Sequence record: MW879341.1
Strand: one strand, 5' to 3'
Length of the DNA stretch: 64,000 nt
The translations under genes and the position numbers were made by a program. Positions within the stretch are counted from its first letter, which is position 1; each line of letters starts with the position of its first letter. Below the pieces are notes generated by a model. It did not search any database. It was not told the DNA's origin and was given only the letters and a program-made list of their open reading frames with translations. Of the stretch, positions 685 through 30,371 are shown piece after piece.

Positions 685-1989
685 ATGCAGTACAAATCCC
701 TGTTAAACATTAGTGCGGAGAGTCTGGTTCAAGAGACTGTCCTGCCTGAAGGTCGTGTCCCACTGGCACCTACTGACGTTGCGTATAACGAAGACGGTAG
801 TGTGGTTCTTCGTACTGACGAAGATCTGGCTGTTTCTCAAGAAGCTATTGCGTCTCTGGCAACCATCTACCACAAACTGACAAACATCAAATTCTCCATG
901 CGTGCAAATGCTGCGTATGGACCGTTGTCTAAAGTTTCAGTAGAAGCGTACGACAGTGCAATCAACCATGTACTGCGTAACACAGGCTTACGTGATCTGA
1001 TGGTATCGGTCGAAGGATTTGAATACGACCACGATTCATCCCTCACGTATTCTGAAGAAGGTATTAAAGATGCCTTGCAGAAGATCATCGATAAGATCGT
1101 TGAGCTGATCAAAGGTTGGTTCACCAAAGCTGAGAACTATGCTGAGAAAATCCTCGCAGGTACGGCTGACCTGAAGCCGCGTGCTCAGGCGTTGCGTGAC
1201 GCCATTCGTGGTTGGGGTCCTAAAGAACCTAAAGTAGCCGAGATCGACATCAGCGGTGGTGAAGCGGCGTGGATTACCTACAAAGGTACACCTAACTTGC
1301 TCTATGCTTCTGGCATTGCGGCGGGTACTTGTCAGAAAACTATCGCCGGCCTGCCGAGTGACTGCGTGATGTACGTTAACAAACTGACTGACGTACTGCG
1401 TGGTTGGACTCGCGACCCTAACAGTTACAATCCAGACAACCCGTTTGAAGACAACAAATTCTTCCCACGTCTGCCGGAGACTAATCCGAAAACGATGGTT
1501 AGCGAGCAGTGGTCTATCGGACCGTATCAGTTGGGCTATACCGAACACAACCACCTGAAGACCGCAAGCTTTACTGAGCGTGAAGGTTTTGAGATGGGTG
1601 ACGGTACTACTCTGAAAGTACTGACGCCTGGCGAATTGTCTAACGTCGTAGCATCTTTTGTGACCATTTTCGGTATCACAGAAAACATCAACGACATCGG
1701 TAAGAAAGCAACTGATGCGCTGAAAAGCTTCGGCAAGTCCATCGAAGATCTGGCCAACATCGAGGCGGATGACGACTCTAAAGTAGATGACATGCGTGCC
1801 TCTGCTATGGAGGCGTGGGAATCCGTACGTAGCTTCTCACAACTCCCACTGGCTGTCGAAGGTAAGGTACTTCAGGTGGCTCGCGCGGCGATTGCTGTTG
1901 CTGAGCGTATGGTAGAAGCATACGGCGAGAAGCCGGCCGAATCAACTGAGGAGAACGCAAGTGGCGAGGATTCTAAGCCTTCAGTCTAA
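685..1989 (+). CDS. phiKZ-like internal head protein (phiKZ_IP-type paralogue)
   Basis: 434 aa. N-terminal region has SAE/SQE/SVE/SEE motifs followed by the amphipathic helix EGIKDALQKIIDKIVELIKGWF typical of this family. Confidence 0.75.
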   Translation: MQYKSLLNISAESLVQETVLPEGRVPLAPTDVAYNEDGSVVLRTDEDLAVSQEAIASLATIYHKLTNIKFSMRANAAYGPLSKVSVEAYDSAINHVLRNTGLRDLMVSVEGFEYDHDSSLTYSEEGIKDALQKIIDKIVELIKGWFTKAENYAEKILAGTADLKPRAQALRDAIRGWGPKEPKVAEIDISGGEAAWITYKGTPNLLYASGIAAGTCQKTIAGLPSDCVMYVNKLTDVLRGWTRDPNSYNPDNPFEDNKFFPRLPETNPKTMVSEQWSIGPYQLGYTEHNHLKTASFTEREGFEMGDGTTLKVLTPGELSNVVASFVTIFGITENINDIGKKATDALKSFGKSIEDLANIEADDDSKVDDMRASAMEAWESVRSFSQLPLAVEGKVLQVARAAIAVAERMVEAYGEKPAESTEENASGEDSKPSV

Positions 1990-3289
1990 CGGGACAATCT
2001 CCACCGAATCAGATATCGATTATGCGGCACGTATTGCACGTATGAAAGAAAGACGACGTGGGCCAGTAACCTCTGAATTAGAGTTAGAGCGTGAATACTC
2101 CCGTTTGGATGCTGACGTCAACGACATTGAACAACTCCAGAACATCGGTAGTAGTTTAGAGTCGTTGTCTGAGACTGTTGTTGCGTTGGCTAAGAACAAC
2201 CAACTCGACGTGGCAGAAATCAAACAGTTTGAGCAACTGGCTAGCGTGATTGCCTCACCAGCTGCGGCTGACCCAATCAAACTGACGACTACCGATGGCC
2301 AGGTCTCCATTGAGTCTCTGACCAATGTGGTTCGTGATATCTATCAGTCAATCACACAGTCTATCCGTCGCGTTACAAACAACACGACGGCTTTCGTCAA
2401 TCGTCTGAGACCTACTGGCGCTATCCTTCGTAAAGACATTAAAGAAGTCCGTGACGCACTCATGCTGTACCGTGATCGTGTCGAGATTGCTATTGTCCCT
2501 ACGGATGCGATGGCTACACTGGTGAGTGCTGATGGTGAGTATGAGTCAGTGCAGTTAGCTCGCTCAATGACATTGCTGTTGGACCACACCAGTTATGCGG
2601 TTAACGAGTTAGCTATCGATACGAGTGCGCAAGCTAAGGCTTTCTCAGATTGGTTGGCTAAACTCGACTTCAGTTCCGATGACGCATACGCCACGACATT
2701 CAGTGAAGTGGTTAAAGTACCAATGGTATCGCCGCCAGGTACGTGGACCACCATTGAGAATGCGGGTGAATCGCGCACTCAGATGGCTAAGATCTCACCG
2801 GTTGCCTTCACAGGACACCAGTTCTTAACCTACGAGCCAAAGACCAATCCGATCACTCCGGCTGAATGGTTGTCTAGTGCAGTATTTGAGACAGCGTTCA
2901 ACTACGGTACTTTGGGTGGTGGTGAGATTCTGCCATCAGAAGACGTATTCGTTGTTGCTGACGTGGCGAGCGTTATTCGCTTACTCGATCAGTCGTTGGA
3001 ACTGTTGGACTTACACGACGTATACAGTCGCACCTCAGCAGTTACTACGAAATACCTTCTGTGTACTATCGCTACTGTAGATGATATCTCCACAGCGAGA
3101 CTGGCAGAGGCATCTCTGTTAGGTGAAGGGAACCAAGCGAGTCTAGCATTAGCTATACAGGCGGTTAACGCCGTGTTGATGCGAACACAACGTCCTTACT
3201 CTGACGTATTATACGAAACCATTCGCGTTATCAACGGCGTGGTTAGTCTTGCCTCTTCTGTAAAAACAGCAGTCGAAAAGGCCGAATAA
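1961..3289 (+). CDS. Internal head protein paralogue
   Basis: 442 aa, GTG start after GAGGAG, overlapping the previous gene. STE/SLE/SIE motifs, then helix SLTNVVRDIYQSITQSIRRV. Confidence 0.7.
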   Translation: MARILSLQSNGTISTESDIDYAARIARMKERRRGPVTSELELEREYSRLDADVNDIEQLQNIGSSLESLSETVVALAKNNQLDVAEIKQFEQLASVIASPAAADPIKLTTTDGQVSIESLTNVVRDIYQSITQSIRRVTNNTTAFVNRLRPTGAILRKDIKEVRDALMLYRDRVEIAIVPTDAMATLVSADGEYESVQLARSMTLLLDHTSYAVNELAIDTSAQAKAFSDWLAKLDFSSDDAYATTFSEVVKVPMVSPPGTWTTIENAGESRTQMAKISPVAFTGHQFLTYEPKTNPITPAEWLSSAVFETAFNYGTLGGGEILPSEDVFVVADVASVIRLLDQSLELLDLHDVYSRTSAVTTKYLLCTIATVDDISTARLAEASLLGEGNQASLALAIQAVNAVLMRTQRPYSDVLYETIRVINGVVSLASSVKTAVEKAE

Positions 3290-3337
3290 TACGAACAGTG
3301 CGTAAAATCCTTTTTCTAAGCTATAGGAACAGTTAAT

Positions 3338-5791
3338 ATGAAACGTTTGCATTCTCTGATGCAACTCCGTCAGCCGACCGTGTCGCAGGAATCAGATAAC
3401 ACCGATGGTCAGGTTGTTGAGCAACCAATCGAAGGTGCGCCAGTGGTACAGTCACAAACTGACGTACTGGCTGAACAAGGTCAAGCTGCTGATGCGGCAC
3501 AGGCTGCTAACGCGCAAGTTCCTGCTGATGGCAGCGTGCTGGCCGATGGCACTGGTAACGTATCGCAGGAAGATGGTAGCGACCCACTCGTAACCGCACC
3601 AGTTGGTGCAGGTGCTGGTACCGTACCGAACAAAACCGTTGACGGTGGCGATGGTTCTCAGCCAGCTTCTCCAAGCGACCAGCCTGGTGACGCTAACAAG
3701 CGTGCTGATGTTGGTAGCTCTGTATCTCAGGAAGGTCAACCGCCTGCTCCAACCCAACCCGCTGGTCAGGCACAACCTGCACAGAAACCCGCCGGTCAGA
3801 ACGTATCTCAGGAATCCACTGAAGGTACCGTTGCTGAAGCTCCTGTGGGTAAAGGTGAACCAACCGTACCTAATGGTCAGTCTGACACGGGTGACGGTTC
3901 TCAGCCAGCTTCTCCTTCTGACGTACCCGGCGATTCCGATAAACGCGCTGACGTTGGTTCTTCCAACGCACAACCTGCGGACCTGGCACCAGAGATGGAC
4001 CAGAAAGATCCGAAAGCTGCCCAGCCTTCTTTCTCAGCGACTGCGCCGCAGAAAGATAATGTAGCTGCCGATGCTAACAACCCACAGGACGGCATGCCTG
4101 CTGAACCTGTTAAAGCGGGTGAAGTTCCTGCCGCAACTGCTGCCTCTACCGAAGCGCTGTCTCCAGAAGACGTAGCTCAGGTTGCACAGGTCGCTGCTGC
4201 TGCCGGTGCAGCTGCTGCTCAAGGCGGTGCTGCGGTTAACACTGAAATCGTTGACGGTGCCGCTGCCGCAGGCGATGCTGCTGTGGCTGAAGGTGCTGAC
4301 GCTGCAACTGCGGCGGCTGCTAACGCTGCTGATCCAGGTGGTGCTGCTGCACAGACCGCCGCTGACGAAGTGGCTTCTGCTGCTAACTCTGGCGACGCCC
4401 CGGGTCCTAACGCTGGTGAAGCTGCGGCTACTCCTGCTGAAGCTGCCCAGGTTGCTGCTGACCTCGTGAAAGATAACCCGGACAATGCTGCTGCTATTGC
4501 ACAGGCTATTGATCAGGTTGCTGATGCTGCTGTTGCGGCTTCTTCTGGTGGTGGCGCTGTTCAGGAAAACGCTGCTGATGCAGCTGCAACCGAACAACCA
4601 GCCCAACAGTCTGACGACGAGTTCAACAACAACGAAGAACAGCAGACCGATGACGAGTTCAACGAAGCTGAAGAGAAGAAGGGCGAAGCTGCTGACGGTC
4701 TGGATGATCTTGATGATCTGAACGACGACGTAGAAGTTGCTACTGAATCACTCGTCGGTGCTCGTGAACTGCTGTGTGGTCTGGAAAGTATCGTTGAAGC
4801 CGCGCTGCAAAACGGCGGTCTGTCTGACGACGCTGCGCAGATTCTGCAAAAGGTAGCTACTCACGTATCTGAGCAAACTGACCAGCCGGACGAAGCTGAC
4901 CTGGGTCTGGAGTCACTGGCGTATAGCGATCGCCTGATTGCTACTGAATACGCTCTGGGTAAACTGCGTTCAAGCATCGAATCTATCGACGCTGATCTGC
5001 AAGTGTCAACTGAAGGTCTGTTCGACATCTTCCGCTCCACTAACTCCAAGACTCGTTCTTGGGTGGCAGAGTCTCGCAAGGTTGTGAGCAAACTCAAAGG
5101 TTCAATTGACAAGACCAAGAAAGTGACTGTCAACGTTCCAGGCATCACCGACCGCGAAGGTTATCTGGAAGGTAGTGATCGCAGCCTGTTGGCTCTGGCA
5201 AACATCCTGAAGAAACACACCGACAACGTGGTTAACCAGGCTGGTTCTGTTGCTAAAGTTGCAGAGCGTCTGCGTAACGGTAATGCTGACTTTGACCGCG
5301 CAAGCGATGATATGGACCGCATCACCATCACCACACCTGACGGTAACGGTAGCTACGATTCCGGTGAACTGCTGGGTGGTGTTGAACTGAGTCTGACCAT
5401 CGGCGGTACTGAGTCTGAAGCTAAGTACTCTAAAGTGGGTGGCTCAGCTAGCGTTGAGATCACTGGTGAGAATGCTGTAGTGGCACTCGATGCAGCAGAA
5501 CGTCTGTTGGGTATCATGGAAGGCGCACTGCGTCGCTTCGATGAGATCGAACGTGGCGCTGATAGTGCTGATGGTAAAGGTAGTGGCAAAGCGCTGATTT
5601 ACCTGTTCCTCTTCAGCTACCTGGCAGTGCTGTCTCCAGACTTCCGTCGCCGTATTGGCCGTGTGTTCTCTGGCGATCGTCAGAACGACCGTGTTGCTGA
5701 ACTCAAGGCTGCGTTCGATCTGTCTAAACTGGCTATGAAAGCATCACGCGTAGCAGTGGATGAAGTTATCTCTGTGGCTAAGAAGTTCTAA
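3338..5791 (+). CDS. Internal head protein with a very long acidic, Ala/Pro/Gln-rich propeptide
   Basis: 817 aa. About 560 aa of low-complexity N-terminus with repeated VSQE plus ATE/GLE/SIE/STE motifs before a folded C-terminal domain. Confidence 0.75.
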   Translation: MKRLHSLMQLRQPTVSQESDNTDGQVVEQPIEGAPVVQSQTDVLAEQGQAADAAQAANAQVPADGSVLADGTGNVSQEDGSDPLVTAPVGAGAGTVPNKTVDGGDGSQPASPSDQPGDANKRADVGSSVSQEGQPPAPTQPAGQAQPAQKPAGQNVSQESTEGTVAEAPVGKGEPTVPNGQSDTGDGSQPASPSDVPGDSDKRADVGSSNAQPADLAPEMDQKDPKAAQPSFSATAPQKDNVAADANNPQDGMPAEPVKAGEVPAATAASTEALSPEDVAQVAQVAAAAGAAAAQGGAAVNTEIVDGAAAAGDAAVAEGADAATAAAANAADPGGAAAQTAADEVASAANSGDAPGPNAGEAAATPAEAAQVAADLVKDNPDNAAAIAQAIDQVADAAVAASSGGGAVQENAADAAATEQPAQQSDDEFNNNEEQQTDDEFNEAEEKKGEAADGLDDLDDLNDDVEVATESLVGARELLCGLESIVEAALQNGGLSDDAAQILQKVATHVSEQTDQPDEADLGLESLAYSDRLIATEYALGKLRSSIESIDADLQVSTEGLFDIFRSTNSKTRSWVAESRKVVSKLKGSIDKTKKVTVNVPGITDREGYLEGSDRSLLALANILKKHTDNVVNQAGSVAKVAERLRNGNADFDRASDDMDRITITTPDGNGSYDSGELLGGVELSLTIGGTESEAKYSKVGGSASVEITGENAVVALDAAERLLGIMEGALRRFDEIERGADSADGKGSGKALIYLFLFSYLAVLSPDFRRRIGRVFSGDRQNDRVAELKAAFDLSKLAMKASRVAVDEVISVAKKF
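3620..3962 (+). repeat. Intragenic duplication of ~33 aa (VPN..GDGSQPASPSD.PGD..KRADVGSS), copies at ~3620-3720 and ~3863-3962
   Basis: Visible in both the protein and the DNA (GGTTCTCAGCCAGCTTCTCC occurs in both copies). Confidence 0.85.
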
Positions 5792-5802
5792 GCATAACAA
5801 TC

Positions 5803-5835
5803 AAGGCTCTACCCTGCGGTAGAGCCTTTTATGCC
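5803..5835 (+). terminator. Hairpin terminator AAGGCTCTACC-CTGC-GGTAGAGCCTT followed by TTATGCC
   Basis: 11-bp stem after the stop codon at 5791. Confidence 0.8.
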
Positions 5836-5896
5836 GCCCTACAACTTCAATTACTATGAGTTAATGAACAACAACTTAAACTTTAAGGGCACAGCC

Positions 5897-7213
5897 ATGT
5901 ACGAACCCGGTACTAACGAAGAGTTCTCCAACAACGAGTATCCTAACTATACTCAAACCGTTGGGAACAGCTTCGCCAGCAGTTTCCAGGACCAGACTGA
6001 GAAGTCTGAGAACGATCTGAATAAATTGCAGAACGTTGCTTCTGGTTTGTTCCAGATTTACAACCACGTTGTTGATACTGCTGCTAAGGGTGCGCCTATG
6101 ACCCCTTATGACTCAGCTGTAATCTCAACCACTATCGCTAACATGACTTCGTCAGTTGGCGTTGAGTCTATGGTTACCCCAGTTGCCAGTCTGGAATCTC
6201 GCCTCGACCAATCCATTGGGTTACAGATCACCCAGGAGTCTATTGGCGAAACCATCAAGAAGACAATCCTCCGTCTGTTTGATGTGTTGAAAAACCTGGC
6301 TGCTCGTTTTGTTAAGTGGGTAGTTAGTCAGGTTGAAAACATCGGTAGCAATACTCGTCGTCTGCAACGACTATTAAACACCATCGATCGTGTAACGGGT
6401 GTGGCCGGTGTTAAATACACTCCGGCGATGCGCGGTATTCTGGTGGATAATCAGGTTCCTGCGCGTTGGATGGATGTTGGCATTCGCACCTACGAAGCAG
6501 CTACTGAGATTTCAGTCAGTGTCGGTAAGATGGCTGACTATGCTGAGGCTATCCTCGAAGAGTGTCAGAAGCAGATCAACAAGCCAATCGAAGGTGAAGA
6601 GTTCAGCCAAGCACTTCTTAATAAGATGGTCACTTGCCCTAAACTCTCCCTACCGAAAGCCGTCTCTCGTGACGGTACACTGAATGACACCAATATGGCG
6701 CGCCGCGTTGAGTGGTCTCAACCACTGTGCGGCAACAGCATTGCCATCTCACTGTCGCCAGTTAACCCTACCGATCCAATCGATGCGGTGAACTACGGTG
6801 TGGCATTAATTCCAACCAGTATGGCTAGCGAGTACGGTATCAAAACTAACTACAAGTTAGAAGATAACGATGACACGCTCGTTACCGTCCAGGTTGAAGA
6901 TATGGTCGCCAACAATGCGAAACTCAATTCGCGCTTGGGTAGCTACCATCGTGAAATTAGCGCAATCAACAACCGCGTTGAGAAGATGCAGAAACGTCTG
7001 GACGCTGTGGCCAAAGATTATAACTCCGGCAAGTTCGGCGATCGCTTCGACACAGACTCAAGTCAGATTGTTCTGGAGTTCGCAGGCGTTGCTCGCTCCG
7101 TGATGTCAGGAGCACTGGCCTCACTGAACACAACCTTCGAATTACTCAACACCACCACAAGCGCTATGGGTGCAATTTGTGGTGCAATTAATGCTAAGAG
7201 CGCAAGGGGTTAA
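5897..7213 (+). CDS. Internal head protein paralogue
   Basis: The ORF track starts at 5831, but that ATG is the ATG of the terminator's TATGCC tail; ATG 5897 (MYEPG) is more plausible. GVE/SLE/TQE motifs, then SIGETIKKTILRLFDVLKNL. Confidence 0.7.
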   Translation: MYEPGTNEEFSNNEYPNYTQTVGNSFASSFQDQTEKSENDLNKLQNVASGLFQIYNHVVDTAAKGAPMTPYDSAVISTTIANMTSSVGVESMVTPVASLESRLDQSIGLQITQESIGETIKKTILRLFDVLKNLAARFVKWVVSQVENIGSNTRRLQRLLNTIDRVTGVAGVKYTPAMRGILVDNQVPARWMDVGIRTYEAATEISVSVGKMADYAEAILEECQKQINKPIEGEEFSQALLNKMVTCPKLSLPKAVSRDGTLNDTNMARRVEWSQPLCGNSIAISLSPVNPTDPIDAVNYGVALIPTSMASEYGIKTNYKLEDNDDTLVTVQVEDMVANNAKLNSRLGSYHREISAINNRVEKMQKRLDAVAKDYNSGKFGDRFDTDSSQIVLEFAGVARSVMSGALASLNTTFELLNTTTSAMGAICGAINAKSARG

Positions 7214-7219
7214 TAACCA

Positions 7220-8440
7220 ATGTCCAAAGCAAAACTTTTAAACCTGAGCGTTGAAAACTACGACTCAGCACAAGGCGAAACCGCTGGTGCCGCCGTTTAC
7301 CAGATGCTTCCTCCAAGTGAAGTGTTTCCTGTCCCGGCACCGGTATCTCAAGATGCTGACCTCGATCGTCTGCGCGTAATTGCGGATGCCCTGGATGGTG
7401 TTCAGGATGGACTGGGCAGTCGCATCGCCACTATCGGTGCTCAGGTACTGGGCGGTGGTGATGGTGTGGGCGTTGAAGCGTTCAATCCAGGTGCCGTAGG
7501 TAAGGCTATCTCTAACTTCGTTGATGTGGCCATTGCGTACATCAAGAAGTTCGTTGCTGCTGTGTTGGAGTTCGGTCGTCGCTTTGTTGAAACTCGTCGC
7601 TATGAGCGCCAGTCTGCACTCGACGTACAGAAGGTTGTCAGTAAGTTCGTTCAGCAGAACCGTGGTTTCACTACTGTGGTTTCTGGTCCGGGTGCGGACT
7701 TCCTGTCGTTTGGTAGTAGCAGTCTCACCTTCGGAACTATCGCTGGTCCTGGTGAACTGGCTAAAGCTGCTAAAGCATTCCAGACCGAAGTCCACACGCC
7801 GTACCTGGCATGGTTCAAAGACAATGCGGATATCCTGAAGAAGGTAAATGATCAACTGGAACGCATCTTTAAAGCTGGTTCGCTGGCTACTGCACCAGAA
7901 GAACCGTTTACTGCTCTGATCGACATCAAAGCGTCTGAACCGCCTCGTGGTTGGAAAGCGAACAGTGGTCGTAAGACTGGCTTCGTTGCACCAACAGGTG
8001 CGTGGGGTGGTGCTAGCTTCTACGTTACGCCTGACTCCAGCATTCTGATTTCTAACCTGAGCGCGCACGATGCCTGTGACCTGAACGTTGAATCTAACGA
8101 CGTCACTGCCACTGTAACCGGTGACCTGCTGAATGAGTACTCTAAGCTGGCTGTAGGTCTGGTCGACATGCAGATTGCTCTGGCTGGTCCGTACGACGTC
8201 ATTCAAGCTGTGTCGAAGAATATCTTCGATAACTACAGCCGTAAGTTCGTTGATAACGACTTCGATCTCGATGACGCCGCGCTGATGCAGAAGATCGGCA
8301 ATCGTAACTCACAGCTCAACAACATCATGGGCTATGTCAGCTACGTGATGACTTGTGTTGCTGGTTATATGTCTTACCTCAATGCAACGCGTCGTGCTAT
8401 CAGCGACATGTGCACTGAAGTGACTACGGTCAAGAAATAA
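7220..8440 (+). CDS. Internal head protein paralogue
   Basis: 406 aa. LSVEN and GVEA motifs, then helix VGKAISNFVDVAIAYIKKFV. Confidence 0.7.
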   Translation: MSKAKLLNLSVENYDSAQGETAGAAVYQMLPPSEVFPVPAPVSQDADLDRLRVIADALDGVQDGLGSRIATIGAQVLGGGDGVGVEAFNPGAVGKAISNFVDVAIAYIKKFVAAVLEFGRRFVETRRYERQSALDVQKVVSKFVQQNRGFTTVVSGPGADFLSFGSSSLTFGTIAGPGELAKAAKAFQTEVHTPYLAWFKDNADILKKVNDQLERIFKAGSLATAPEEPFTALIDIKASEPPRGWKANSGRKTGFVAPTGAWGGASFYVTPDSSILISNLSAHDACDLNVESNDVTATVTGDLLNEYSKLAVGLVDMQIALAGPYDVIQAVSKNIFDNYSRKFVDNDFDLDDAALMQKIGNRNSQLNNIMGYVSYVMTCVAGYMSYLNATRRAISDMCTEVTTVKK

Positions 8441-8450
8441 GTCTCGACGG

Positions 8451-8481
8451 CTAGGAGGGAAACCTCCTAGCTTTTATTTCG
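8451..8481 (+). terminator. Hairpin terminator CTAGGAGG-GAAA-CCTCCTAG followed by CTTTTATTTC
   Basis: 8-bp perfect stem with GNRA loop and T-tract after the stop at 8440. Confidence 0.8.
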
Positions 8482-8490
8482 GAGGTTCGA

Positions 8491-9843
8491 ATGAACACGG
8501 GTATTGAACAACAGGTTTCAGTGGGAGATGTCCCCGATGGACTAGCACCTACTGACCCCAATAATCAATTAACCACCGATAGTCAAGACGTCGAGTTTGC
8601 ACCCAACATTAAAGGTGTGGACGATTCCGTTGTTGACTATACGGGAATTGCCACTGAACTCTCTAACGGTCTAGTCGCTGCTCAAGAAGCATTTGCTAAC
8701 ATTCGTGCGCTAGTCGCATGGAGAACGACCTTAGAGGGATATGGTGACGAGCCACTAACTCCACAACTGCAAGTCGCTACAGAGGTTATCCTCGACCTGA
8801 CGACACGCAGTGCTGGTCTCAGTAGTGTAGACATCATTCCGTCACTGGAAGATCTGAGTAACCCAACTATTTCCGTAGAAGCGCTTTACAAGTACGCAGA
8901 ACGTCTCTATGAAGCGTTGGGTCGTCTGATTACCCGCATCGGTGAACTCCTTTCTAAACTGTACTCTGCATTAACCAGCCGCATGCGTTGGGTTCGTGCC
9001 GAGTTAGTGATTCTGAAAGGACGTCTCGCTATTGCCAAAGGCGGTCGGGCTAAGTCACTACGTTTCAAAGTTGGGCAACTGGGTAACCTGATGGTTATCC
9101 GTGGTATTCCGGTAACGACTTACTCTGAGTTCCAGTCCAGTGCGACGGATATCAGTGCGCTTGCTACCGCCTGTATCACAACCCACCTGTATGCTATTTC
9201 TGAACTGGGTAAAGAACTCAACAAGATCGTTGATTCTGAAAGTTTCCCTAATCCTCGCGCTACAGAGGCACGGTTAACTCGTGCGTTCGCTACACTGGGT
9301 GATACGTCACTTGGTCTGCTCTGTACTAAGAGTGTTGGGTCAGATCCTCGCTTTGAACGTGCCGGGTATGTCACTACAGCATCAGCTAACCTCTTAGGGA
9401 ATAAGACGGTTTATAAAACGAAGCCACGTCAAGGAAGTGAACTCAATGATACCTTTGGTACAACGACATTCAGCGTTGACCATACGACATTGAAGGTGGC
9501 TAATTATGAACCGAAGGCCGACCAGACCTTTGATACCCTCACACTTTCTGAAGTGGGAAAACTGTTGGATAGTTGCACTGCTATGGCTAACCTGGTTGAC
9601 CGCTTGGATAATAGTGATGTTCGAGGTCGTGTACTGGAGAGCCTGTCTCGTCTACGTAACGCTACAAGTAAACGTGGAAAGGATGGTACGCTCAAAGGGG
9701 AAACGGCAGAACTGATTCAGAGTGCAGCGGTAGCGTTCACGGATGCATGCAGTAACCCACTGAGTGACTTGATGGGTCATCTGATCACTGTTGCCACTGG
9801 CGGTATCAAACTCGCTGGTCGTTCGTTAGACCAGTACGATTAA
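8491..9843 (+). CDS. Internal head protein paralogue
   Basis: 450 aa. AQE/SLE/SVE motifs, then helix ALYKYAERLYEALGRLITRIGELL. Confidence 0.7.
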   Translation: MNTGIEQQVSVGDVPDGLAPTDPNNQLTTDSQDVEFAPNIKGVDDSVVDYTGIATELSNGLVAAQEAFANIRALVAWRTTLEGYGDEPLTPQLQVATEVILDLTTRSAGLSSVDIIPSLEDLSNPTISVEALYKYAERLYEALGRLITRIGELLSKLYSALTSRMRWVRAELVILKGRLAIAKGGRAKSLRFKVGQLGNLMVIRGIPVTTYSEFQSSATDISALATACITTHLYAISELGKELNKIVDSESFPNPRATEARLTRAFATLGDTSLGLLCTKSVGSDPRFERAGYVTTASANLLGNKTVYKTKPRQGSELNDTFGTTTFSVDHTTLKVANYEPKADQTFDTLTLSEVGKLLDSCTAMANLVDRLDNSDVRGRVLESLSRLRNATSKRGKDGTLKGETAELIQSAAVAFTDACSNPLSDLMGHLITVATGGIKLAGRSLDQYD

Positions 9844-9866
9844 ATAATACAGACCTGAGGTTATTT

Positions 9867-10262
9867 ATGAGTCAATATACTGACCTGTACTCACCGGACT
9901 ATAAGACTGCCACTGTTGATTCTGAGGACCCAAACCCGGAGTCAGATTTGGTGGTCTTGAACTCACCGGTCAACGTTGCACCTTCCCACTTTATCTTTGG
10001 TGGTTTAGGTCCGTCCGGTAATGACACTGCCGAACTGCGTTTGCAGATTGGTGAGTTCCAAAAAGGCGGCTTTAACGGTATCCCACCGGAATCGCTGTTG
10101 TTAGCACTGGCCAAGCATTACGAAGGATTACAGGAAAGCTCCATCGCCTCTCCTGAGTATCGCATGGTTGTGAATCTCCTGAACGACTGCATCGGTAGTC
10201 TGAAAGGACGTAACGACATTCGTCAGTACTACGGTAAGTACGGTACCATCGAATCCAACTAA
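9867..10262 (+). CDS. Tad1-like (Thoeris anti-defence sponge fold) protein, divergent
   Basis: 131 aa. LQIG..GFNGIPPESLL..HYEGLQ..SPEY..LKGRNDIR..YGT aligns without gaps beyond one residue to the recalled Tad1 core FQKG..QHGVIDSDLL..RLKSFQ..SREN..MNRRVEDR..LGT. Confidence 0.6.
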   Translation: MSQYTDLYSPDYKTATVDSEDPNPESDLVVLNSPVNVAPSHFIFGGLGPSGNDTAELRLQIGEFQKGGFNGIPPESLLLALAKHYEGLQESSIASPEYRMVVNLLNDCIGSLKGRNDIRQYYGKYGTIESN

Positions 10263-10275
10263 CCTGGAGTTTTAA

Positions 10276-11136
10276 ATGCGCTTAGTATCTCACGACATCA
10301 CTGAAAGCACCACCGAAGACCAGACCGCCACTGGCGTCCAGTCATTCGATCTTTCCAAAGACGGTGTTTTCCAACAGACGTTAAAAGTAACGTCTGACTT
10401 CAATCCGGTTCTTGCTGAAGATCCGACCGTGCTGTCAATCGGTACTCTGCTCACTCTGCTGGACAAAGCTACACAGAAAGGTCTGGCTGTACCAAACACC
10501 CATTCCGCTGTATGGCGTGCGATTATCAACAATACTCGCAACAGTATCGGTGCACACAACTTCTCACAATCTCTGGTAAACAGCGAAACTGCCCCGGTGG
10601 GTTCTCTGGATATCACCGTTCGTTTCCATCCGGCTCTGCGTGAGCTGAACCCGGAAGAACAGATCGTAGAAGTTAAACGCAGTCGTGAACTGTATACGCG
10701 TGAAAGCTACGTGGAGCTGTTCCAACTGCTGCAACACATTCAGTACAGCTTCACTTGCGAAGGTGATCAACTGGTCATCGACGTCTACAACCCGAACCCG
10801 TTCTTCACTGTGGCGGCTGAACAAGTTGTAGATAGTTGGATTACCAAAAACTCAACCACCGATGCAATCATCAGTCTGGGTGGCGGTAAGATGGCAGGGT
10901 ACTACGCTTATCCTAACTTCCTGTTGGGTGAGCCGGAAAGTCGCGCTGAGACTGTTGAAGCTGTCCTGCGTAAACAGCTGCCTGAAACTGTTGGTATCCG
11001 TATCGACACTCTGGGTATCCCTACTCTGTTCATCGAGCAGGATGCTGAGAAAGCTGTGTCTATCGATACTATCCAGAACGCACTGTATAAAGCAGCGCAG
11101 GCTCTGGAAAGCGATTTCATCGGTCCGCAGAACTAA
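10276..11136 (+). CDS. Hypothetical protein
   Basis: 286 aa ORF with a GGAG RBS and strong codon bias; no motif recognised. Confidence 0.75.
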   Translation: MRLVSHDITESTTEDQTATGVQSFDLSKDGVFQQTLKVTSDFNPVLAEDPTVLSIGTLLTLLDKATQKGLAVPNTHSAVWRAIINNTRNSIGAHNFSQSLVNSETAPVGSLDITVRFHPALRELNPEEQIVEVKRSRELYTRESYVELFQLLQHIQYSFTCEGDQLVIDVYNPNPFFTVAAEQVVDSWITKNSTTDAIISLGGGKMAGYYAYPNFLLGEPESRAETVEAVLRKQLPETVGIRIDTLGIPTLFIEQDAEKAVSIDTIQNALYKAAQALESDFIGPQN

Positions 11137-11183: not shown

Positions 11184-11237
11184 GCAAGTCGGATTATATG
11201 AAGAAATCCAAGCATTTTAAATGAGGAGGCGTTGATT

Positions 11238-12782
11238 ATGCCTGTCGTCGTTAATACCATCAAAGAGACCACACAGGCTATCACTCGTCCTGTCGTGCTC
11301 GATGCTCTGAAGATACTGAAGCAGTACACGGGCATCGGTAACAATGTAGAGATTCAGGTCTTTACAGGTTCTAATGCCTCTAGCCTGCCCGGTAGTTTAG
11401 CCAATGCCGGAAACGGTGACAACGTGCGCTTTGACTCACATGAGAAACTCTTAGCGGATTACACTGAGCGTTTCGATGAGAACGACTACGCCACTGCTGC
11501 GGTGAATTGGAAAGATAACGTTCCCTATTTCTTAGACGCACCGTTACAGATTCACATGCGTCCGGTTATCGTAAAGGCTAACATTGAGATTCAAATCCAA
11601 TATCGCTGTCCTAACGAAGCTGCTGCTCAACGTTGGTTAGCGGATATCCGTCAACGCATCAGTATGGAACGTACCGTACTCCCGATGGAACTGAACTACA
11701 CGTATCAGATTCCAATGTCGTACATGGTTATCTTGGCACATCTACACGATCTTCGTGAGAACGTGGCTGGTTACAATCAATCATATCTAGAATGGATTCA
11801 GGCGTGCTTCGATGATCGTGTGACCGTACAGAAAACCAACGGTGAGAAAGGACATCAGTTTACAGTCTGTGAGCGACAAGGTGGTGTGTTGGGTGAGTTT
11901 GATTTCACCAGCGTACCTACTGCTGACCGCAATGAGTCTAACTCGACGTGGACTGTGGGCTTCGGCTTTAAGTTTACCTACGAGAAAGTGATCTCTGCGG
12001 TACTGGAGTATCCAATCGTTGTACACAATCAGGTTGTTGATGCGAAGTTCCGTAAGGACCCTACGCCATATACCCTGACTGAGAAACGGTTGATGAATAT
12101 CTCACGCCGTGCGTACGAACGTATGCCTTACGTTGCGCCTAAAGAGTGGGAGCATCCGATTGGGGGTATCGTTATACCTACCTACGATGACTGGTTCCCT
12201 GATAATTTCTCTAAGGCAACCACGAGTGTGTTCACTACGCTCTGTACGGTAGATTCTGATGACCCGTATCAGATCTGTAATATCCGTGATCTGGGACCGT
12301 GGCAATTAAACCCACTGTTCCTCGACTGGATTCAGACTAACCCGAAACTGTGTTTCTCACAAACGCGTTCACCGTTGGTTATTGAGTTCTATACGGGTAA
12401 CACGCGTTTCACGCAAGAGGCACTGTACCTCGATGAGCAACTGAACCTCAGGTCGGTCACGCCGTTGAATGAACGGTTGATTCACCACCTGCGCTTTGCA
12501 TTAGTTACAGACCTCACTGTAATCTCTGAGCCTTACCAACGTAACCTAAGAAACCACGGCGCTATCTGCCAAGAATTCTTACGTGTTATTGACCCAACGT
12601 TAGAACAGGTTGGACTACTGCCTAGACTCAGAGGCGGTAAGATGGTCGCTCCACTGGATTACGATAAAGCTGTTCGTGCTATCGGTACGACAGACCCGAC
12701 ATACAAAACTCGCCCAGAGCGTCGTAGACTGAGGGTGGGTCAATTCGTCTTCTACGTTGGAGATAAAAATGCCTGTATTTGA
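11238..12782 (+). CDS. Conserved jumbo-phage virion structural protein (probably neck/baseplate)
   Basis: About 514 aa, GAGGAGG RBS. Same position as the structural genes that follow the head cluster in phiKZ/SPN3US (recalled synteny). Confidence 0.55.
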   Translation: MPVVVNTIKETTQAITRPVVLDALKILKQYTGIGNNVEIQVFTGSNASSLPGSLANAGNGDNVRFDSHEKLLADYTERFDENDYATAAVNWKDNVPYFLDAPLQIHMRPVIVKANIEIQIQYRCPNEAAAQRWLADIRQRISMERTVLPMELNYTYQIPMSYMVILAHLHDLRENVAGYNQSYLEWIQACFDDRVTVQKTNGEKGHQFTVCERQGGVLGEFDFTSVPTADRNESNSTWTVGFGFKFTYEKVISAVLEYPIVVHNQVVDAKFRKDPTPYTLTEKRLMNISRRAYERMPYVAPKEWEHPIGGIVIPTYDDWFPDNFSKATTSVFTTLCTVDSDDPYQICNIRDLGPWQLNPLFLDWIQTNPKLCFSQTRSPLVIEFYTGNTRFTQEALYLDEQLNLRSVTPLNERLIHHLRFALVTDLTVISEPYQRNLRNHGAICQEFLRVIDPTLEQVGLLPRLRGGKMVAPLDYDKAVRAIGTTDPTYKTRPERRRLRVGQFVFYVGDKNACI

Positions 12783-14163
12783 TCCTAACTCAAACACTAC
12801 AAGGCCAAACGCTGCACCGAAGCAACCACAGAAAGTAAACCCCAATCCGACAGCACCTCGCTTGCAGGATGTTAAGGTTGACTCTAAGTTGTTTCCGCGC
12901 ACTGCTATTCTGGCACACGTCAGTGGGTCTAAGTGGGTACCGAAGTTCTATTTGAGTCAGTTCTTGAATGTGGATAACAATCCACAGGCATACAGTGCTG
13001 ACTTACCCGCTGTGTCACAACAGTACAAGAAAATCATTGAACCTGAATTTCGTGTACAGACCCCACTCTCTAATAGTTTCACAGAGGGTGAGAACGAATG
13101 GGTAGTAACCGGCTCAGCAATTCTCTACTTCGGGATTATCCCGAACGTTGGCGATTTGTTCTTAGCGGATATCGGCGATGGTCGTCTGGGTCAGTTCAAC
13201 GTAACCGAAGCAGCACCTAAGTCTTACCTGCAAGCCACGGTATACGAGATCAGTTACAAGCTGATGGGTTATGCTACACCCGAGCTGATGGCAGCACTCG
13301 ATGCTAAGACCATCGAGACGGGTTATTACGTTCGTGACCAGTATCTCTCTGGCAATCAGTCTATCCTGGTTGAGCGTGACGTTAAGGACTACGAGGCATT
13401 GCTGCGTTTATTGCAGACTCTGCCAAACGAGTACCATCGTGACTTCTTCTCCAGCGAGTTCCAGACGTATCTGGTACCGGACCAAGAGTTCCCGCTGTAC
13501 GATCCATTCATTACACCGTTCTTCAAAAGACTGGTTGACCCTGAAACCCATTCGTGGATTAGTAAGGTAAACCTGCTGAACGTTGACACGGGTAACGACA
13601 AAGTTATCACCACTGTGTTGGATGCGGCCTTAGAGAATGACGAAAGTATTATCGATCGTTGTCAGGCTTATATCTATCCTACCAACGTTAAGTATTTCAC
13701 TACTCAAGCGCTGTTTGGTAATATCCGTTATAGCGGTATTGAGTTTGTGATGTTCCCGAAAGGGGTGGACGTCTGGCATTACGAGAAAGCCTACATTACT
13801 GTAGATGCATTCAAGTTACGTCTGGGTCCTAACCTAACGTTGAACCGTAAGACACACCTTACGGAAGCATTCAGTACCCACAACTTACCAGCTCCTGGTA
13901 ATGAGTTCGGTATTGAGCTGCCATGGATACACGCTAACGCTGTAACCGACACGTACATTTTCTCTCCGAGCTTCTACGAATCTAAACCAGACCAGTCTGC
14001 GTTAGAACTCCTGTTCCGTTCTGCGGTTAATGGGAAAATCGTAGACGCACAGAAACTCATTAAAGCCAGTGCGGACCGTGTGTTGTGGACGAGTGCTACT
14101 CGCTTCTACTATATCCCGATTCTGATGTACTGCATTCGAACTGCACTCGCCAATATAGGTTAA
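12769..14163 (+). CDS. Conserved jumbo-phage virion structural protein
   Basis: About 464 aa, overlapping the previous gene. The GIIPNVGDLFLADIGDGRLGQFNV beta-barrel-like segment resembles head-tail joining proteins. Confidence 0.55.
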   Translation: MPVFDPNSNTTRPNAAPKQPQKVNPNPTAPRLQDVKVDSKLFPRTAILAHVSGSKWVPKFYLSQFLNVDNNPQAYSADLPAVSQQYKKIIEPEFRVQTPLSNSFTEGENEWVVTGSAILYFGIIPNVGDLFLADIGDGRLGQFNVTEAAPKSYLQATVYEISYKLMGYATPELMAALDAKTIETGYYVRDQYLSGNQSILVERDVKDYEALLRLLQTLPNEYHRDFFSSEFQTYLVPDQEFPLYDPFITPFFKRLVDPETHSWISKVNLLNVDTGNDKVITTVLDAALENDESIIDRCQAYIYPTNVKYFTTQALFGNIRYSGIEFVMFPKGVDVWHYEKAYITVDAFKLRLGPNLTLNRKTHLTEAFSTHNLPAPGNEFGIELPWIHANAVTDTYIFSPSFYESKPDQSALELLFRSAVNGKIVDAQKLIKASADRVLWTSATRFYYIPILMYCIRTALANIG

Positions 14164-25845: not shown

Positions 25846-27408
25846 TTAGGCTGCGAAGTCCATCCAGCCATTGCCCCCACCTTGCGAGTTAGCGTTGCCG
25901 CCCACTTTCCTACGAGACATGTCTGGACCACCGACATCTTCTGGAATACCCAATGCAGGGTGGAACTTGTACACACAATACAGATCTTCTTCCTTCGTAA
26001 TACCCACCTTACGGTGTTTACCACGCTGGATAGTAAGGAACGATTCGCCGTCGACTTTCTCAATGTGGATTAACAGTTCCAGGTCGACTTCTTGGTCGAT
26101 GACACGACAGCCATCCCAATAACCTTTGTTAGCAATTTCTTTAACAAAGGACTCAGTACCATTACGCAGTAGGTTCTTAGCTTCAGAGCTGATCTGGTGC
26201 GGTGTGATAACTGTGATGCCACGCGGGTTACAGTAGTTACGTACACGACGGAACAAGTCACGCACGTCCGTACCCGTAGCACCGGTGACGCAGCCTTCTT
26301 TCGACATCATGTTCAGGTAGTCGATAGTCAGCAAGTGAATCTCATAACCCTGAGATTCATATTTGTTCAGCAGGTTAAAGAGTTTCTGGTAGTTGAACAT
26401 ACTTGGGTTCACACGGAGCATAGTCACGGTGTAGCCAGTACGTTCCAGATGCACTTTAACATACGATGCAATTTCAGCATAGAACTCTGGATTGTTCTTG
26501 GCGTCTTCTGCCAGCTGGGTAATCTCCAGCTTCTGTCCAGTCTCCTGCGCTTTCAATGTCACGTACAGTTGAATCACGTTATCTTTAACGGAGTTCTCTG
26601 TACTGATGTGTAAGATCATCGGCTTCTTAGTTGGATCACGCATGTATGGCGTTGCGTTCATCGCAATCTGACGAGTCAGGTCTAAGGTAAAGCCCGTTTT
26701 AAAGTTGTGCTGTAGTGCGCCAACAACAATAAAGTCACCACGACGGAAACCACCGTACTCACCCATCATTCGGTTGAGTCCTTGCCAACGAGTTTGCATA
26801 ATCCCGTCAGCACCAGACTCTTCTAAACCACGACGGATTGCGTCTGTCAGTGTCGAAACGTCAGAAGTATTAATCTCATCAACGATAGCGGCGTCAGCAG
26901 CTTCAAAACGTTGGCCAGTAAATGGTTCAAGCTCACCTTTAAATTCCGACATAAAGGAAGCCCAATCAATTGACTCTTCTTCGAAAGCCAATCGACTACT
27001 ATACTTCTTCACAACGCCCTTGATATCCTCACGCTCTTTATAAGCATAGAGGTCATTGCGGTGTTCTGAACACTGCGCTTTGATCGTCTCAGGAGTCTCT
27101 TCTAAACCTAGACCTTCTTCAATGGCAGTGAATAAACCTTCCTCAGCAGAGACGTTCACACGCAATCTTTGCAGTAAAGATGTTTTATCGTATGTATGTG
27201 TGTGGGATTGTTCCGTCATCCACGCCGCTGTTGACTTCATTCCGTTCAATGCATCTGTACTCGACTCGGTACCAAAACCGTTGTCGATGTTTTTCATACG
27301 ACCCAGGATTTCCTTAACCAGGCTCGCTGAGTTATCTACGGGGTTTTGCACGCGCGATTCCCAATAGAGTAACATGATGCATTTGAACAATACGAGTTTA
27401 GTATCCAT
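25846..27408 (-). CDS. dnaB: Replicative DnaB-like helicase (phiKZ gp118 type)
   Basis: GGFRRGDFIVVGALQHNFKT (variant Walker A), LHISTEN, LLTIDYL (Walker B), TPHQIS and QRGKHR; divergent from the capsid gene as in phiKZ-like phages. Confidence 0.9.
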   Translation of the reverse strand: MDTKLVLFKCIMLLYWESRVQNPVDNSASLVKEILGRMKNIDNGFGTESSTDALNGMKSTAAWMTEQSHTHTYDKTSLLQRLRVNVSAEEGLFTAIEEGLGLEETPETIKAQCSEHRNDLYAYKEREDIKGVVKKYSSRLAFEEESIDWASFMSEFKGELEPFTGQRFEAADAAIVDEINTSDVSTLTDAIRRGLEESGADGIMQTRWQGLNRMMGEYGGFRRGDFIVVGALQHNFKTGFTLDLTRQIAMNATPYMRDPTKKPMILHISTENSVKDNVIQLYVTLKAQETGQKLEITQLAEDAKNNPEFYAEIASYVKVHLERTGYTVTMLRVNPSMFNYQKLFNLLNKYESQGYEIHLLTIDYLNMMSKEGCVTGATGTDVRDLFRRVRNYCNPRGITVITPHQISSEAKNLLRNGTESFVKEIANKGYWDGCRVIDQEVDLELLIHIEKVDGESFLTIQRGKHRKVGITKEEDLYCVYKFHPALGIPEDVGGPDMSRRKVGGNANSQGGGNGWMDFAA

Positions 27409-28004: not shown

Positions 28005-28091
28005 GAAACCACCGCTAAATACGGTAATACTATGCATTATCGTTTTTGAACGGTCGTAGCTTTAAATTCAACGTTGAAGGAAATAAAAGAA

Positions 28092-30371
28092 ATGGGTAAG
28101 CTTCTTGATACCAAAACCCGCAGCTCCCTGAGTGACGCGGTAAGCGAAGTTAATAGCCACCTGAAAGCTCAGGGTGTTGGCGTATTCTCTGCTGGCCTGG
28201 CTGGCAAAGTTGCATCTATGGAATCCCTGGGTGACGCAGATCTGAACGAACTGCGCGACATTGCCAAAGGTGCGACCGTATCTGTAGAAAGCATGCTGGG
28301 TCACATGGGTCTGACCGCTAAAGGTACCGGCCACGAATATCTTGCTGAGCGCCGCGACCAGGCTTCTCGTGAAGCTGCATCCATCGTGATGATGGCTCAG
28401 GGTGACCCGGTTGGTTATCAGCAGAAAGCTCTGTCTGTCGGCGTTGAAGATTTCAAAGACGCTTCTCAGGGCCGTAAAGTTGCAGTACTGGGCGAAGGCG
28501 CATACGGCAACATGCAGTATGGCGAATCTGCTAAGTTCGGTCTGGAGTCTTACGACGAAAACGAACTGCGTAAGCACATCGCATTCTCTACCGTATTTGC
28601 TGCGGCAACTGCGCGTCAGGCTGACTTCGCTGAAGCCTTCCTGCCAACCTACGTGGTTTCACCAGAGCAGATCGGTACCGACGTTCGCGTCCGCCGTAAC
28701 ATGGTTCTGAACCGTAAACTGCACCCGATCACCGGCAAGCCGATGGATCTGGAAAAGATCAACCTGCTGGAAGCCTTCCGTAACCACGAGATTCTGTCAA
28801 ACGAATCTACTCTGCTGGTTCCGGTATACCGCGATGAGTCTAAAGACAACTTCGTCGATACCGCGAAAGTGAAAGTGACCACCAAACAGGTTGACGGCGT
28901 TGACGTTGAAACCGCACCACTGGTCTTCGGTAAAACCATCGACCTGCTGGGCGTGTCTCAGAACGACCAGCTTCTGAAAGCCGGTATCGTTGACAACACC
29001 GATGCAATCGACGCCTACACTCGTCTGGATAACATCTTCCTGGCAGTTGGCGATTCAATCGTTTCCTTCAACGTGCGTCGCTCTCCGCGTGCCGGTGCTG
29101 TGAAATCGGTAGAAGGCGATAGCCGTGAGATGAACTTCCAGTTCACCACTCAGGACCTGCTGCTGACTGCTGAAACTAAAGACGTTGACGGTGCCGCTGT
29201 TGCTGGCCTGGCAGCTCTGGGTAAACTGCGTCTGCGCGTGCAGCTGGACATCACCGGCCGCATGAACGTCGAATACGGTAATATCAACCTGAATCCTTCC
29301 AGCCTGGAAGTGGTTGCCGTGTTCAACGAACAGAACGAAGCTATCTCTCTGAACGATGCTTCAGCTAAAGCCATCATCGATGCGCTGAAACTGTCTGCAT
29401 TCGGTTACGAGCTGTTCGCTCGTCGTAACAACGCCAACCGTCGTAACCAAGGTCTGCTGGTTGACGTTACTGAGTTCGCAGAGCGTTACACTGTTCCGAT
29501 CAGTTCTCCACTGAGCACCGTTGCTCCGCTGGCTACTGACAAGTCTGCTAAAGATCTGCAAGCGCTGATCAACGCAGCCAACATCCGTACCAACAACAAC
29601 GCAGTGACCCTGATCCTGAACTATGCAGATGACCTGCAACGCGCTACCCAGACCAGCTTCTTCAAGTCTTCACTGACTTCAGTTCCTGGTATCGGTCGCC
29701 TGCTGGTAGAACCGACCTTCAAATACCTGAAGATCGATCTGGCGAAAGAAGTGAACTCCGTACAGTCTGCACAACGTGCTGCTGACATCCAGGGTGCACT
29801 GGTAACTCCAATCCGCAACATGGCTTACGAGCTGGTGCGTGATTCAAACTACCAGGCTGCGCTGGACGCGGATTCCGAAGGTCGCTCTGAGCGTCCACAC
29901 CTGGTTGTAGGTACCGACATCGTAACCCAGCAGTTCCTGATGGTTACCGGTGACGACCGCACCCTGTCCATCGGCATGGATCACACCATCGTTGCGTCTC
30001 CGGACAAACGTATGGTTGGCAAGATCGTGCTGGCGTTCGTGCGTAAAGGTACCACTGAGCCAGATGCTCTGAGCTTCGGTGCTCACATCTACATCCCAGA
30101 GCTGAGCTCTGTTGTTCCAGTAAACCGTTTCGGCGAGACTTCTCGTGAAACCATGATCCAGATGCGTAACCTGCAAATCACCAACCTGCCGGTAATGGGT
30201 CTGATCGAAGTGGTTAACCTGGATGTTGCAACTGCGACCCGCACTGAGCTGGACGTTAACTCTAAGCCTGTTAAATCCGACGCCGGCAACGGTGGCGATA
30301 ACGGTGGTGACAACGGCGGCGATAATGGCGGCGACAACGGTGGCAGCAACGGCGGTACCGACGGTAAGTGA
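28092..30371 (+). CDS. Major capsid protein (phiKZ gp120/SPN3US gp75 type)
   Basis: About 759 aa with the strongest codon bias in the window. N-terminal propeptide with SME/SVE/GVE/GLESY sites, FAEAFLPT, FGAHIYIPEL. ATG 28092 follows AAGGA. Confidence 0.9.
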   Translation: MGKLLDTKTRSSLSDAVSEVNSHLKAQGVGVFSAGLAGKVASMESLGDADLNELRDIAKGATVSVESMLGHMGLTAKGTGHEYLAERRDQASREAASIVMMAQGDPVGYQQKALSVGVEDFKDASQGRKVAVLGEGAYGNMQYGESAKFGLESYDENELRKHIAFSTVFAAATARQADFAEAFLPTYVVSPEQIGTDVRVRRNMVLNRKLHPITGKPMDLEKINLLEAFRNHEILSNESTLLVPVYRDESKDNFVDTAKVKVTTKQVDGVDVETAPLVFGKTIDLLGVSQNDQLLKAGIVDNTDAIDAYTRLDNIFLAVGDSIVSFNVRRSPRAGAVKSVEGDSREMNFQFTTQDLLLTAETKDVDGAAVAGLAALGKLRLRVQLDITGRMNVEYGNINLNPSSLEVVAVFNEQNEAISLNDASAKAIIDALKLSAFGYELFARRNNANRRNQGLLVDVTEFAERYTVPISSPLSTVAPLATDKSAKDLQALINAANIRTNNNAVTLILNYADDLQRATQTSFFKSSLTSVPGIGRLLVEPTFKYLKIDLAKEVNSVQSAQRAADIQGALVTPIRNMAYELVRDSNYQAALDADSEGRSERPHLVVGTDIVTQQFLMVTGDDRTLSIGMDHTIVASPDKRMVGKIVLAFVRKGTTEPDALSFGAHIYIPELSSVVPVNRFGETSRETMIQMRNLQITNLPVMGLIEVVNLDVATATRTELDVNSKPVKSDAGNGGDNGGDNGGDNGGDNGGSNGGTDGK
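30288..30359 (+). repeat. Six 12-bp units encoding (NGGD/S/T) at the MCP C-terminus
   Basis: AACGGTGGCGAT AACGGTGGTGAC AACGGCGGCGAT AATGGCGGCGAC AACGGTGGCAGC AACGGCGGTACC. Confidence 0.9.

Follow-up and report, generated by a model that had tools for sequence, protein, structure and literature searches.

A divergent Tad1-like protein with replaced pocket residues in the head-gene block of Erwinia amylovora jumbo phage pEa_SNUABM_54

The Erwinia amylovora jumbo phage pEa_SNUABM_54 (MW879341.1; 272,635 bp) carries, within the window analysed here (the first 64 kb of its genome), a gene for a 131-residue protein that is almost certainly a true, very divergent homologue of the immune-signal sponge Tad1. 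Tad1 sequesters gcADPR, and many homologues also sequester the di- and trinucleotides of CBASS. On balance we favour the reading that the window protein captures a phosphate-bearing, nucleotide-derived immune signal as well, with an altered specificity and without the trinucleotide site. The literature in which pEa_SNUABM_54 is named contains passing mentions, such as a table listing, and our literature search on the signalling defences of Erwinia amylovora returned nothing informative.

Results

Identification of a Tad1 homologue

The gene at 9867-10262 (plus strand) is an ATG-to-TAA frame of 131 codons that holds one complete Tad1 domain and is labelled hypothetical protein pEaSNUABM54_00008 in GenBank. 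The frame on which an earlier sequence-only reading had built is present at exactly these positions in the sequence and in the ORF list, together with a ribosome-binding site (Table 1). Compared with the orthologue in L002, a related metagenomic phage (76% amino-acid identity), the dN/dS is about 0.13, which indicates a selected coding gene under purifying selection.

Table 1. Positions of the Tad1-like gene, its predicted structural elements and neighbouring features in the 64-kb window
Feature	Position	Strand	Basis or remark
Terminator-like hairpin, 10-bp stem with 6 G-C pairs, T-run	8449..8472	+	Consensus match only
phiKZ-type internal head protein, PF12699, 62 bits	8491..9843	+	Orthologue directly upstream in four loci
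GAGG ribosome-binding site	9857..9860	+	6 nt before ATG, inside 23-nt spacer
Tad1-like ORF, 131 aa plus TAA stop	9867..10262	+	ORF list, sequence, Tad1 matches, dN/dS
Predicted N-terminal antiparallel beta-sheet, aa 6-59	9882..10043	+	AlphaFold2; low-confidence loop aa 19-29
Predicted helix alpha1, aa 74-89	10086..10133	+	AlphaFold2; bears H84 (CbTad1 R78) and L88 (F82)
Predicted helix alpha2, aa 96-121	10152..10229	+	AlphaFold2; bears P96, Y98, N103, S111, R115, R119
Codon TAT for Y98, replacing the adenine-reading Asn	10158..10160	+	Sequence, column counts
Retained Arg pair, R115 (cgt, 10209-10211) and R119 (cgt, 10221-10223)	10209..10223	+	Equivalent to CbTad1 R109 and R113
Co-oriented downstream gene, 286 aa, no family match	10276..11136	+	13 nt after Tad1-like stop; syntenic in L002 and L005

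When the window protein alone is compared with the PDB sequences using phmmer, it matches the Tad1 of Clostridioides mangenotii (CmTad1, solved structure 8kbb) over residues 38-129 with an E-value of 0.002. The alignment has two short gaps only, both in the N-terminal part, and runs gapless through the last ~75 residues, where the sequence-only reading had recognised the Tad1 core. APSHF, which it had assigned to a Tad1 motif position, stands opposite APHHF of CmTad1. A profile built from the four closest homologues reaches CmTad1 with an E-value of 1.5e-5 and also matches the C-terminus of phiKZ gp184 (8y6v chain I, E 1.9e-4). When hhalign sets the clade of six against 62 canonical Tad1-type proteins, the probability is 97.9% and the E-value 3.6e-13 over 94 columns. 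In the reverse direction, a profile made from other Tad1 relatives alone picks 9867-10262 as its sole match (64 bits) among the 423 six-frame ORFs of the window.

The family databases give little. Scans of the window protein and its clade with Pfam, NCBIfam and PADLOC returned no match, and for PF24729 (Acb2/Tad1 hairpin) none of the six proteins was hit even at E-values up to 10. The latter model is insensitive, however: its gathering threshold is 27 bits and a canonical relative reaches just 26.1 bits. NCBIfam likewise gives nothing for a canonical Tad1 relative. PHROGs places the window protein weakly in an unnamed family (phrog_2428, E 1e-5).

Fold and relatives

In Tad1, an antiparallel beta-sheet at the N-terminus precedes two long C-terminal helices. 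The AlphaFold2 model of the window protein, for which an alignment of 66 sequences with mostly canonical Tad1 was used, has a mean pLDDT of 74.8 and a pTM of 0.66 and predicts strands at aa 6-9, 12-17, 41-47 and 53-59 and two helices (Table 1). With this model Foldseek finds CbTad1 and CmTad1 chains at all top 20 positions in the PDB (E down to 7e-6, TM ~0.7, near full length), after which the matches drop to E-values above 1. Among the predicted viral structures of BFVD, the best matches are two proteins of 193 and 230 aa, which equal in length the gp184-type proteins of PA1C and phiKZ; proteins labelled Acb2/Tad1 hairpin come next.

Because the first alignment was dominated by canonical Tad1, a control model was made from the six clade members, excluding canonical Tad1. 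Its confidence is low (pLDDT 57), but the secondary structure is the same, with strands recurring at ~14-17, 41-47 and 53-58, and the top 20 PDB matches are still all Tad1, though weakly so (E 6e-3 to 0.2, TM 0.37). Judging from both models, the window protein would adopt the Tad1 fold, and all 131 residues, beyond the C-terminal 75, would form one Tad1 domain.

The sequence-only proposal of a Tad1-fold homologue is borne out by the phmmer, profile, hhalign and Foldseek results, the matches to Tad1 proteins and structures being significant in the profile comparison as well as in the fold comparison. A chance resemblance, or descent from another hairpin family such as Acb2, would fit the silence of Pfam, NCBIfam and PADLOC, the modest single-sequence E-value and the identity of just 12-22% to Tad1 structures, but is hardly credible against the profile-profile score, a reverse profile match that is unique within the window, 20 best PDB fold matches that are all Tad1 (with no Acb2 among the 50 matches listed) and an alignment that spans the beta-sheet as well as the hairpin.

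Close relatives are few. A word-indexed protein search found only three, and P0005 and P0007 were reached through a full scan of 1.84 billion representative proteins, which gave 30 matches at E < 1e-3. Among short proteins, three clusters scored below 1e-10, namely P0003, P0005 (43-44% identity) and P0007 (37%), all belonging to this clade; no canonical Tad1 did better than about 1e-8. The remaining matches are ordinary Tad1-like proteins or giant Ig-repeat proteins. The giants (P0006, P0008, P0009 and P0032; up to 5,271 aa) contain bacterial Ig-like/cadherin repeats and align up to 23 times each with residues 9-66 of the clade profile. We rejected them as homologues, the signal being a repeat-amplified weak local similarity to the beta-strand region.

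A maximum-likelihood tree groups the window protein with its five clade relatives on a single long branch (length 2.68, support 100/99), separate from all other sequences, and places the Phabio and PA1C proteins of the gp184 type among canonical Tad1. A sister relationship between the window clade and the gp184 clade is unsupported by this tree, in which long branches make the placement unsure.

Ligand pocket

In CbTad1, F82 and R109 stack the adenine and N92 reads its Hoogsteen edge. The diphosphate is bound by R57, R109 and R113, F87 supports the ribose, and H29, G55, R78 and N122 read the ribose-ribose linkage. Mutation of R109 and R113 abolishes the binding of gcADPR and cGAMP. Cyclic trinucleotides are bound through R90 and T97, which also build the hexamer together with a patch that includes a Trp; the trinucleotide and hexamer residues of CmTad1 are K96, Q98, E99, M102, W103 and K106. 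Table 2 compares the main positions over the aligned relatives.

Table 2. Tad1 pocket and interface positions over 150 aligned relatives (142 outside the window clade, six clade members)
CbTad1 position	Window protein	Outside the clade	Clade members
R109	R115	Arg 142/142	Val in one member (P0005)
R113	R119	Arg 141/142	Arg 6/6
N92	Y98	Asn 141/142	Y/Y/Y/Y/Y/F
F82	L88	Phe 138/142	L/L/L/L/M/Y
R78	H84	Arg 139/142	H/H/H/H/Y/H
F87	I93	Phe or Tyr 137/142	I/I/V/I/M/L
R90	P96	Arg 121/142	P/P/A/P/R/D
T97	N103	Thr 121/142	N/N/N/N/G/D
Hexamer Trp	S111	Trp 128/142	S/S/S/S/S/I

The core of Tad1 is kept in the window protein (G62, N70-G71, E75, Q89, R115/R119, G123 and G126-T127), G126 being the equivalent of CbTad1 G120. 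Of the four pocket residues that have been validated by mutation, two differ here (the F82 and N92 equivalents). Changes are also seen at R78, in the lid motif and probably at H29, where the window protein has a Ser with a His one residue on and the alignment is ambiguous. The C-terminal lid reads YGKYGT, against RGVEGT in canonical Tad1. The canonical forms of the adenine-recognising Phe and Asn, of the R78 contact and of the lid motif are absent from the window protein, and so are the cyclic-trinucleotide-site and hexamer-interface residues of canonical Tad1, the equivalents here being P96, N103, L104, N106, D107, G110, S111 and G114.

These results agree with the pocket as it had been read from the sequence: LQ replaces FQ (L88), PEY replaces REN (P96, E97, Y98), the arginine pair is kept in the form RxxxR (R115 and R119), and a Tyr takes the place of an Arg near the C-terminus (Y122). 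Although clade members share as little as 37% and at most 87% identity, they conserve these clade-specific residues. Since the replacements are conserved in this way, they suggest a function that is maintained but different, rather than decay.

One clade member departs from the pattern. P0005 (L005 8001-8390) has a Val at the position of CbTad1 R109 and an additional Arg directly ahead of the second one of the pocket; from its sequence, either a shifted phosphate contact or a loss of binding could result.

Gene context

The position right after internal head genes, noted in the sequence-only reading, holds up, with PF12699 matches above the gathering score. Besides the gene directly upstream (Table 1), gene 5831-7213 encodes a phiKZ-type internal head protein (PF12699, 34 bits; gathering score 27), and gene 12757-14163 encodes a head-tail joining protein. 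The Tad1-like gene starts 23 nt after the stop of 8491-9843, and together with the downstream gene 10276-11136 the two lie in a long co-oriented run.

The same slot is occupied by a Tad1-like gene in L002 (an 82-kb contig; 76% identical) and L005 (a 267,632-bp contig; 43% identical). On L006, a 1.1-kb fragment whose Tad1-like gene is 37% identical, the partial upstream gene matches the C-terminus of the 8491-9843 product (E 3e-29). The spacer is exactly 23 nt in all four loci (9843-9867 here, 7977-8001 in both L002 and L005, and 521-545 in L006), a constant length despite proteins that are just 37-76% identical. At its start stands a conserved GATTAA, of which the stop codon is a part, and it holds a purine-rich ribosome-binding site. 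In the loci with measurable flanks, identity is 76% and 42% for the Tad1-like protein against 74% and 41% for the upstream internal head protein. Because its divergence tracks that of the adjacent head genes, the Tad1-like gene is an old, vertically inherited resident of the head block and not a recent accessory gain.

A terminator-like hairpin (Table 1) sits between genes 7220-8440 and 8491-9843. It may split the head-gene run and form the upstream boundary of a transcription unit made up of 8491-9843 and the Tad1-like gene. The promoter and terminator scan gave site counts no higher than in shuffled sequences and is silent on timing; phiKZ-type phages use their own polymerases.

Several further observations concern the surroundings. 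Six large co-oriented genes fill 685-9843 (plus strand), at least two of which (5831-7213 and 8491-9843) pass the PF12699 threshold. Genes 685-1989 and 1961-3289 overlap by 29 nt, and their L002 and L005 orthologues show PF12699 matches, too. Genes 11232-12782 and 12757-14163 (plus strand) have TTG starts in the ORF list and start at 11238 and 12769 in GenBank; in either version they are consecutive and overlap by a few codons. A 313-aa antisense ORF at 7265-8206 (minus strand) lies wholly within gene 7220-8440 and most likely does not code, being a shadow of that gene. Further downstream, a DnaB-like replicative helicase (25846-27408, minus strand; phrog_3213, E 3e-168) is encoded just upstream of the gene for the major head protein (28074-30371, plus strand; phrog_3231, E 1e-159). 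Replication and structural genes are therefore interleaved, as is usual in phiKZ-like genomes.

Discussion

From its resemblance to Tad1 we infer that the window protein would form a Tad1-like homo-oligomer, at least a dimer, with pockets at the subunit interfaces that could enclose a phosphate-bearing, nucleotide-derived immune signal. R115 and R119 would grip the ligand phosphates, and a signal captured in this manner would be unable to activate the defence effector of the host. The residues that give canonical Tad1 its gcADPR specificity have been exchanged (Asn to Tyr, Phe to Leu, Arg78 to His, lid YGKYGT). Because their replacements form a conserved clade set, the preferred ligand or binding mode is probably different. 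Binding of cA3-type molecules is unlikely, since neither the trinucleotide site nor the hexamer interface is conserved. The gene is probably expressed late, together with the head proteins, given that it is tightly packed behind an internal-head-protein gene.

A more specific version of sequestration, and a sub-case of it rather than a competitor, is that the late-made protein is loaded into the virion with the PF12699 proteins, is injected and neutralises signals from the first minute of infection, as has been proposed for phiKZ gp184. We regard this as possible, if somewhat on the unlikely side. It would fit a gene that is embedded among internal-head-protein genes, that follows a PF12699 gene at 23 nt in all the relatives recovered, and that diverges at the same rate as the head genes. 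Against it, gp184-type proteins have an acidic N-terminal extension of 70-100 aa ending in S-V-E that the window protein lacks, and its sole S/A/G-x-E motif (S95-P96-E97) lies within helix alpha2 of the model. We take S/A/G-x-E to be the cleavage rule of the phiKZ head protease, following the literature on that enzyme. As the extension is absent, the argument for packaging is that of conserved gene position.

Such extensions are found in two Pseudomonas jumbo phages, in Phabio gp271 (L003 5794-6405) and the PA1C protein (L004 5731-6312), where they are acidic, probably disordered and contain I-S-V-E, which fits the same cleavage rule. Both proteins are annotated merely as hypothetical. A match of the PA1C extension to nitrosocyanin is sub-threshold and was discarded as meaningless.

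Packaging also has a precedent in phiKZ gp184, an inner-body interactor whose injection was validated in a proteomics study. In a 2025 transposon-mutagenesis preprint and a 2026 review, which cite Li et al. 2024, gp184 is called Tad1; phiKZ is not mentioned in the 2023 preprint of Li et al. According to the same sources, this capsid-associated Tad1-domain protein has its N-terminus wedged in the capsid vertex complex, and the head protease releases its C-terminal part, which is injected. The concept of a virion-delivered Tad1 sponge is already published with gp184, which lowers the novelty of the packaging concept here.

A different explanation is exaptation: the protein would have kept the Tad1 fold, lost signal binding and taken up a structural or chaperone role for the internal head proteins. 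We consider this unlikely, even though several observations agree with it. The position in the structural block is strictly conserved and the divergence is like that of the neighbours; anti-defence genes are not usually tied to a structural module in this way, and a structural role would explain the arrangement just as well. The near-invariant Asn, Phe and Arg78, the lid and the hexamer residues are lost, and the P0005 sequence, without its R109 equivalent, likewise speaks against a sponge role. In BFVD there is also a weak match to a protein of a Klebsiella jumbo phage (Eowyn) with the database label 'structural protein'; a literature search on this match gave genome announcements and phage-characterisation papers only. 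On the other side, the Arg pair, the glycine of the GT lid and the core NG/E motif are conserved, as expected with a phosphate ligand still bound. Moreover, the capsid-bound part of gp184 is its N-terminus whereas the C-terminal part is injected (phiKZ transposon preprint), and the window protein has no such extension.

Most speculative, and rather improbable as a whole, is the idea that a jumbo-phage lineage has fixed among its head genes a retooled Tad1 which, with a Tyr in place of the adenine-reading Asn, a Tyr-rich lid and a retained Arg pair, captures a signal that no known Tad1 binds and is packaged without the gp184 anchor. The candidate signals would then be His-ADPR, N7-cADPR or a messenger still unknown. 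The protein might perhaps be carried into the capsid by the product of the internal-head gene that ends 23 nt before its own, and would then enter the host with the DNA.

Sponge proteins are productive tools for discovering immune messengers, and a clade in which the phosphate clamp is kept and the base-reading and lid residues have given way to a conserved set of their own is a reasonable bait for a different or unknown signal. The window protein widens what counts as Tad1. Surveys of anti-defence genes in jumbo phages would miss the clade, because Pfam, NCBIfam and PADLOC all miss it and no canonical Tad1 came closer than about 1e-8 in the large scan. Should the protein be packaged, phiKZ gp184 would be joined by a second pre-loaded immune-signal sponge of different architecture; should it bind nothing, it would illustrate how a sponge fold has been drawn into head biology. 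The protein is worth a binding screen, but establishes no new principle.

Comparison with known systems

A distant parallel is T4 IPI*, which is reportedly a packaged and injected anti-restriction protein encoded among head genes; T4 IPI is said to have a capsid-targeting sequence at its N-terminus, at which the prohead protease cleaves. Fold and target are unrelated to those of the window protein, in which no targeting signal is recognisable. Acb2 is closer in that it shares the helical hairpin grouped as PF24729 and is, like Tad1, an oligomeric sponge of nucleotide signals, but it has no counterpart of the N-terminal beta-sheet. No Acb2 entry occurs among the PDB sequence or fold matches listed.

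Canonical Tad1, for which we considered SBSphiJ7 Tad1, CbTad1 (7UAV/7UAW/8SMD/8KBE) and CmTad1 (8KBB-8KBD), shares with the window protein the length class (~120-140 aa), the predicted fold and the core residues. The differences lie in the pocket (Asn92 to Tyr, Phe82 to Leu, Arg78 to His, Phe87 to Ile), in the trinucleotide site and hexamer interface (Arg90/Thr97 to Pro/Asn, the hexamer Trp to Ser) and in the changed lid. In addition, the window protein stands on its own long branch and is encoded in a head-gene block.

The gp184 type is, like the window protein, a jumbo-phage Tad1-domain protein linked to PF12699 inner-body/head proteins. Its Phabio and PA1C representatives have also lost the Arg90/Thr97/Trp set, which is thus not universal in the Tad1 family, and have LQ for FQ in strand beta4. 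However, this type (Phabio gp271 and the 193-aa PA1C protein) keeps Asn92 and an aromatic residue at position 82, whereas the window protein does not. The genes differ in setting as well: in Phabio and PA1C they lie by a large tail gene (tail sheath or tail fiber) and genes of nucleotide metabolism (thymidylate kinase), whereas the gene of pEa_SNUABM_54 lies among internal head genes.
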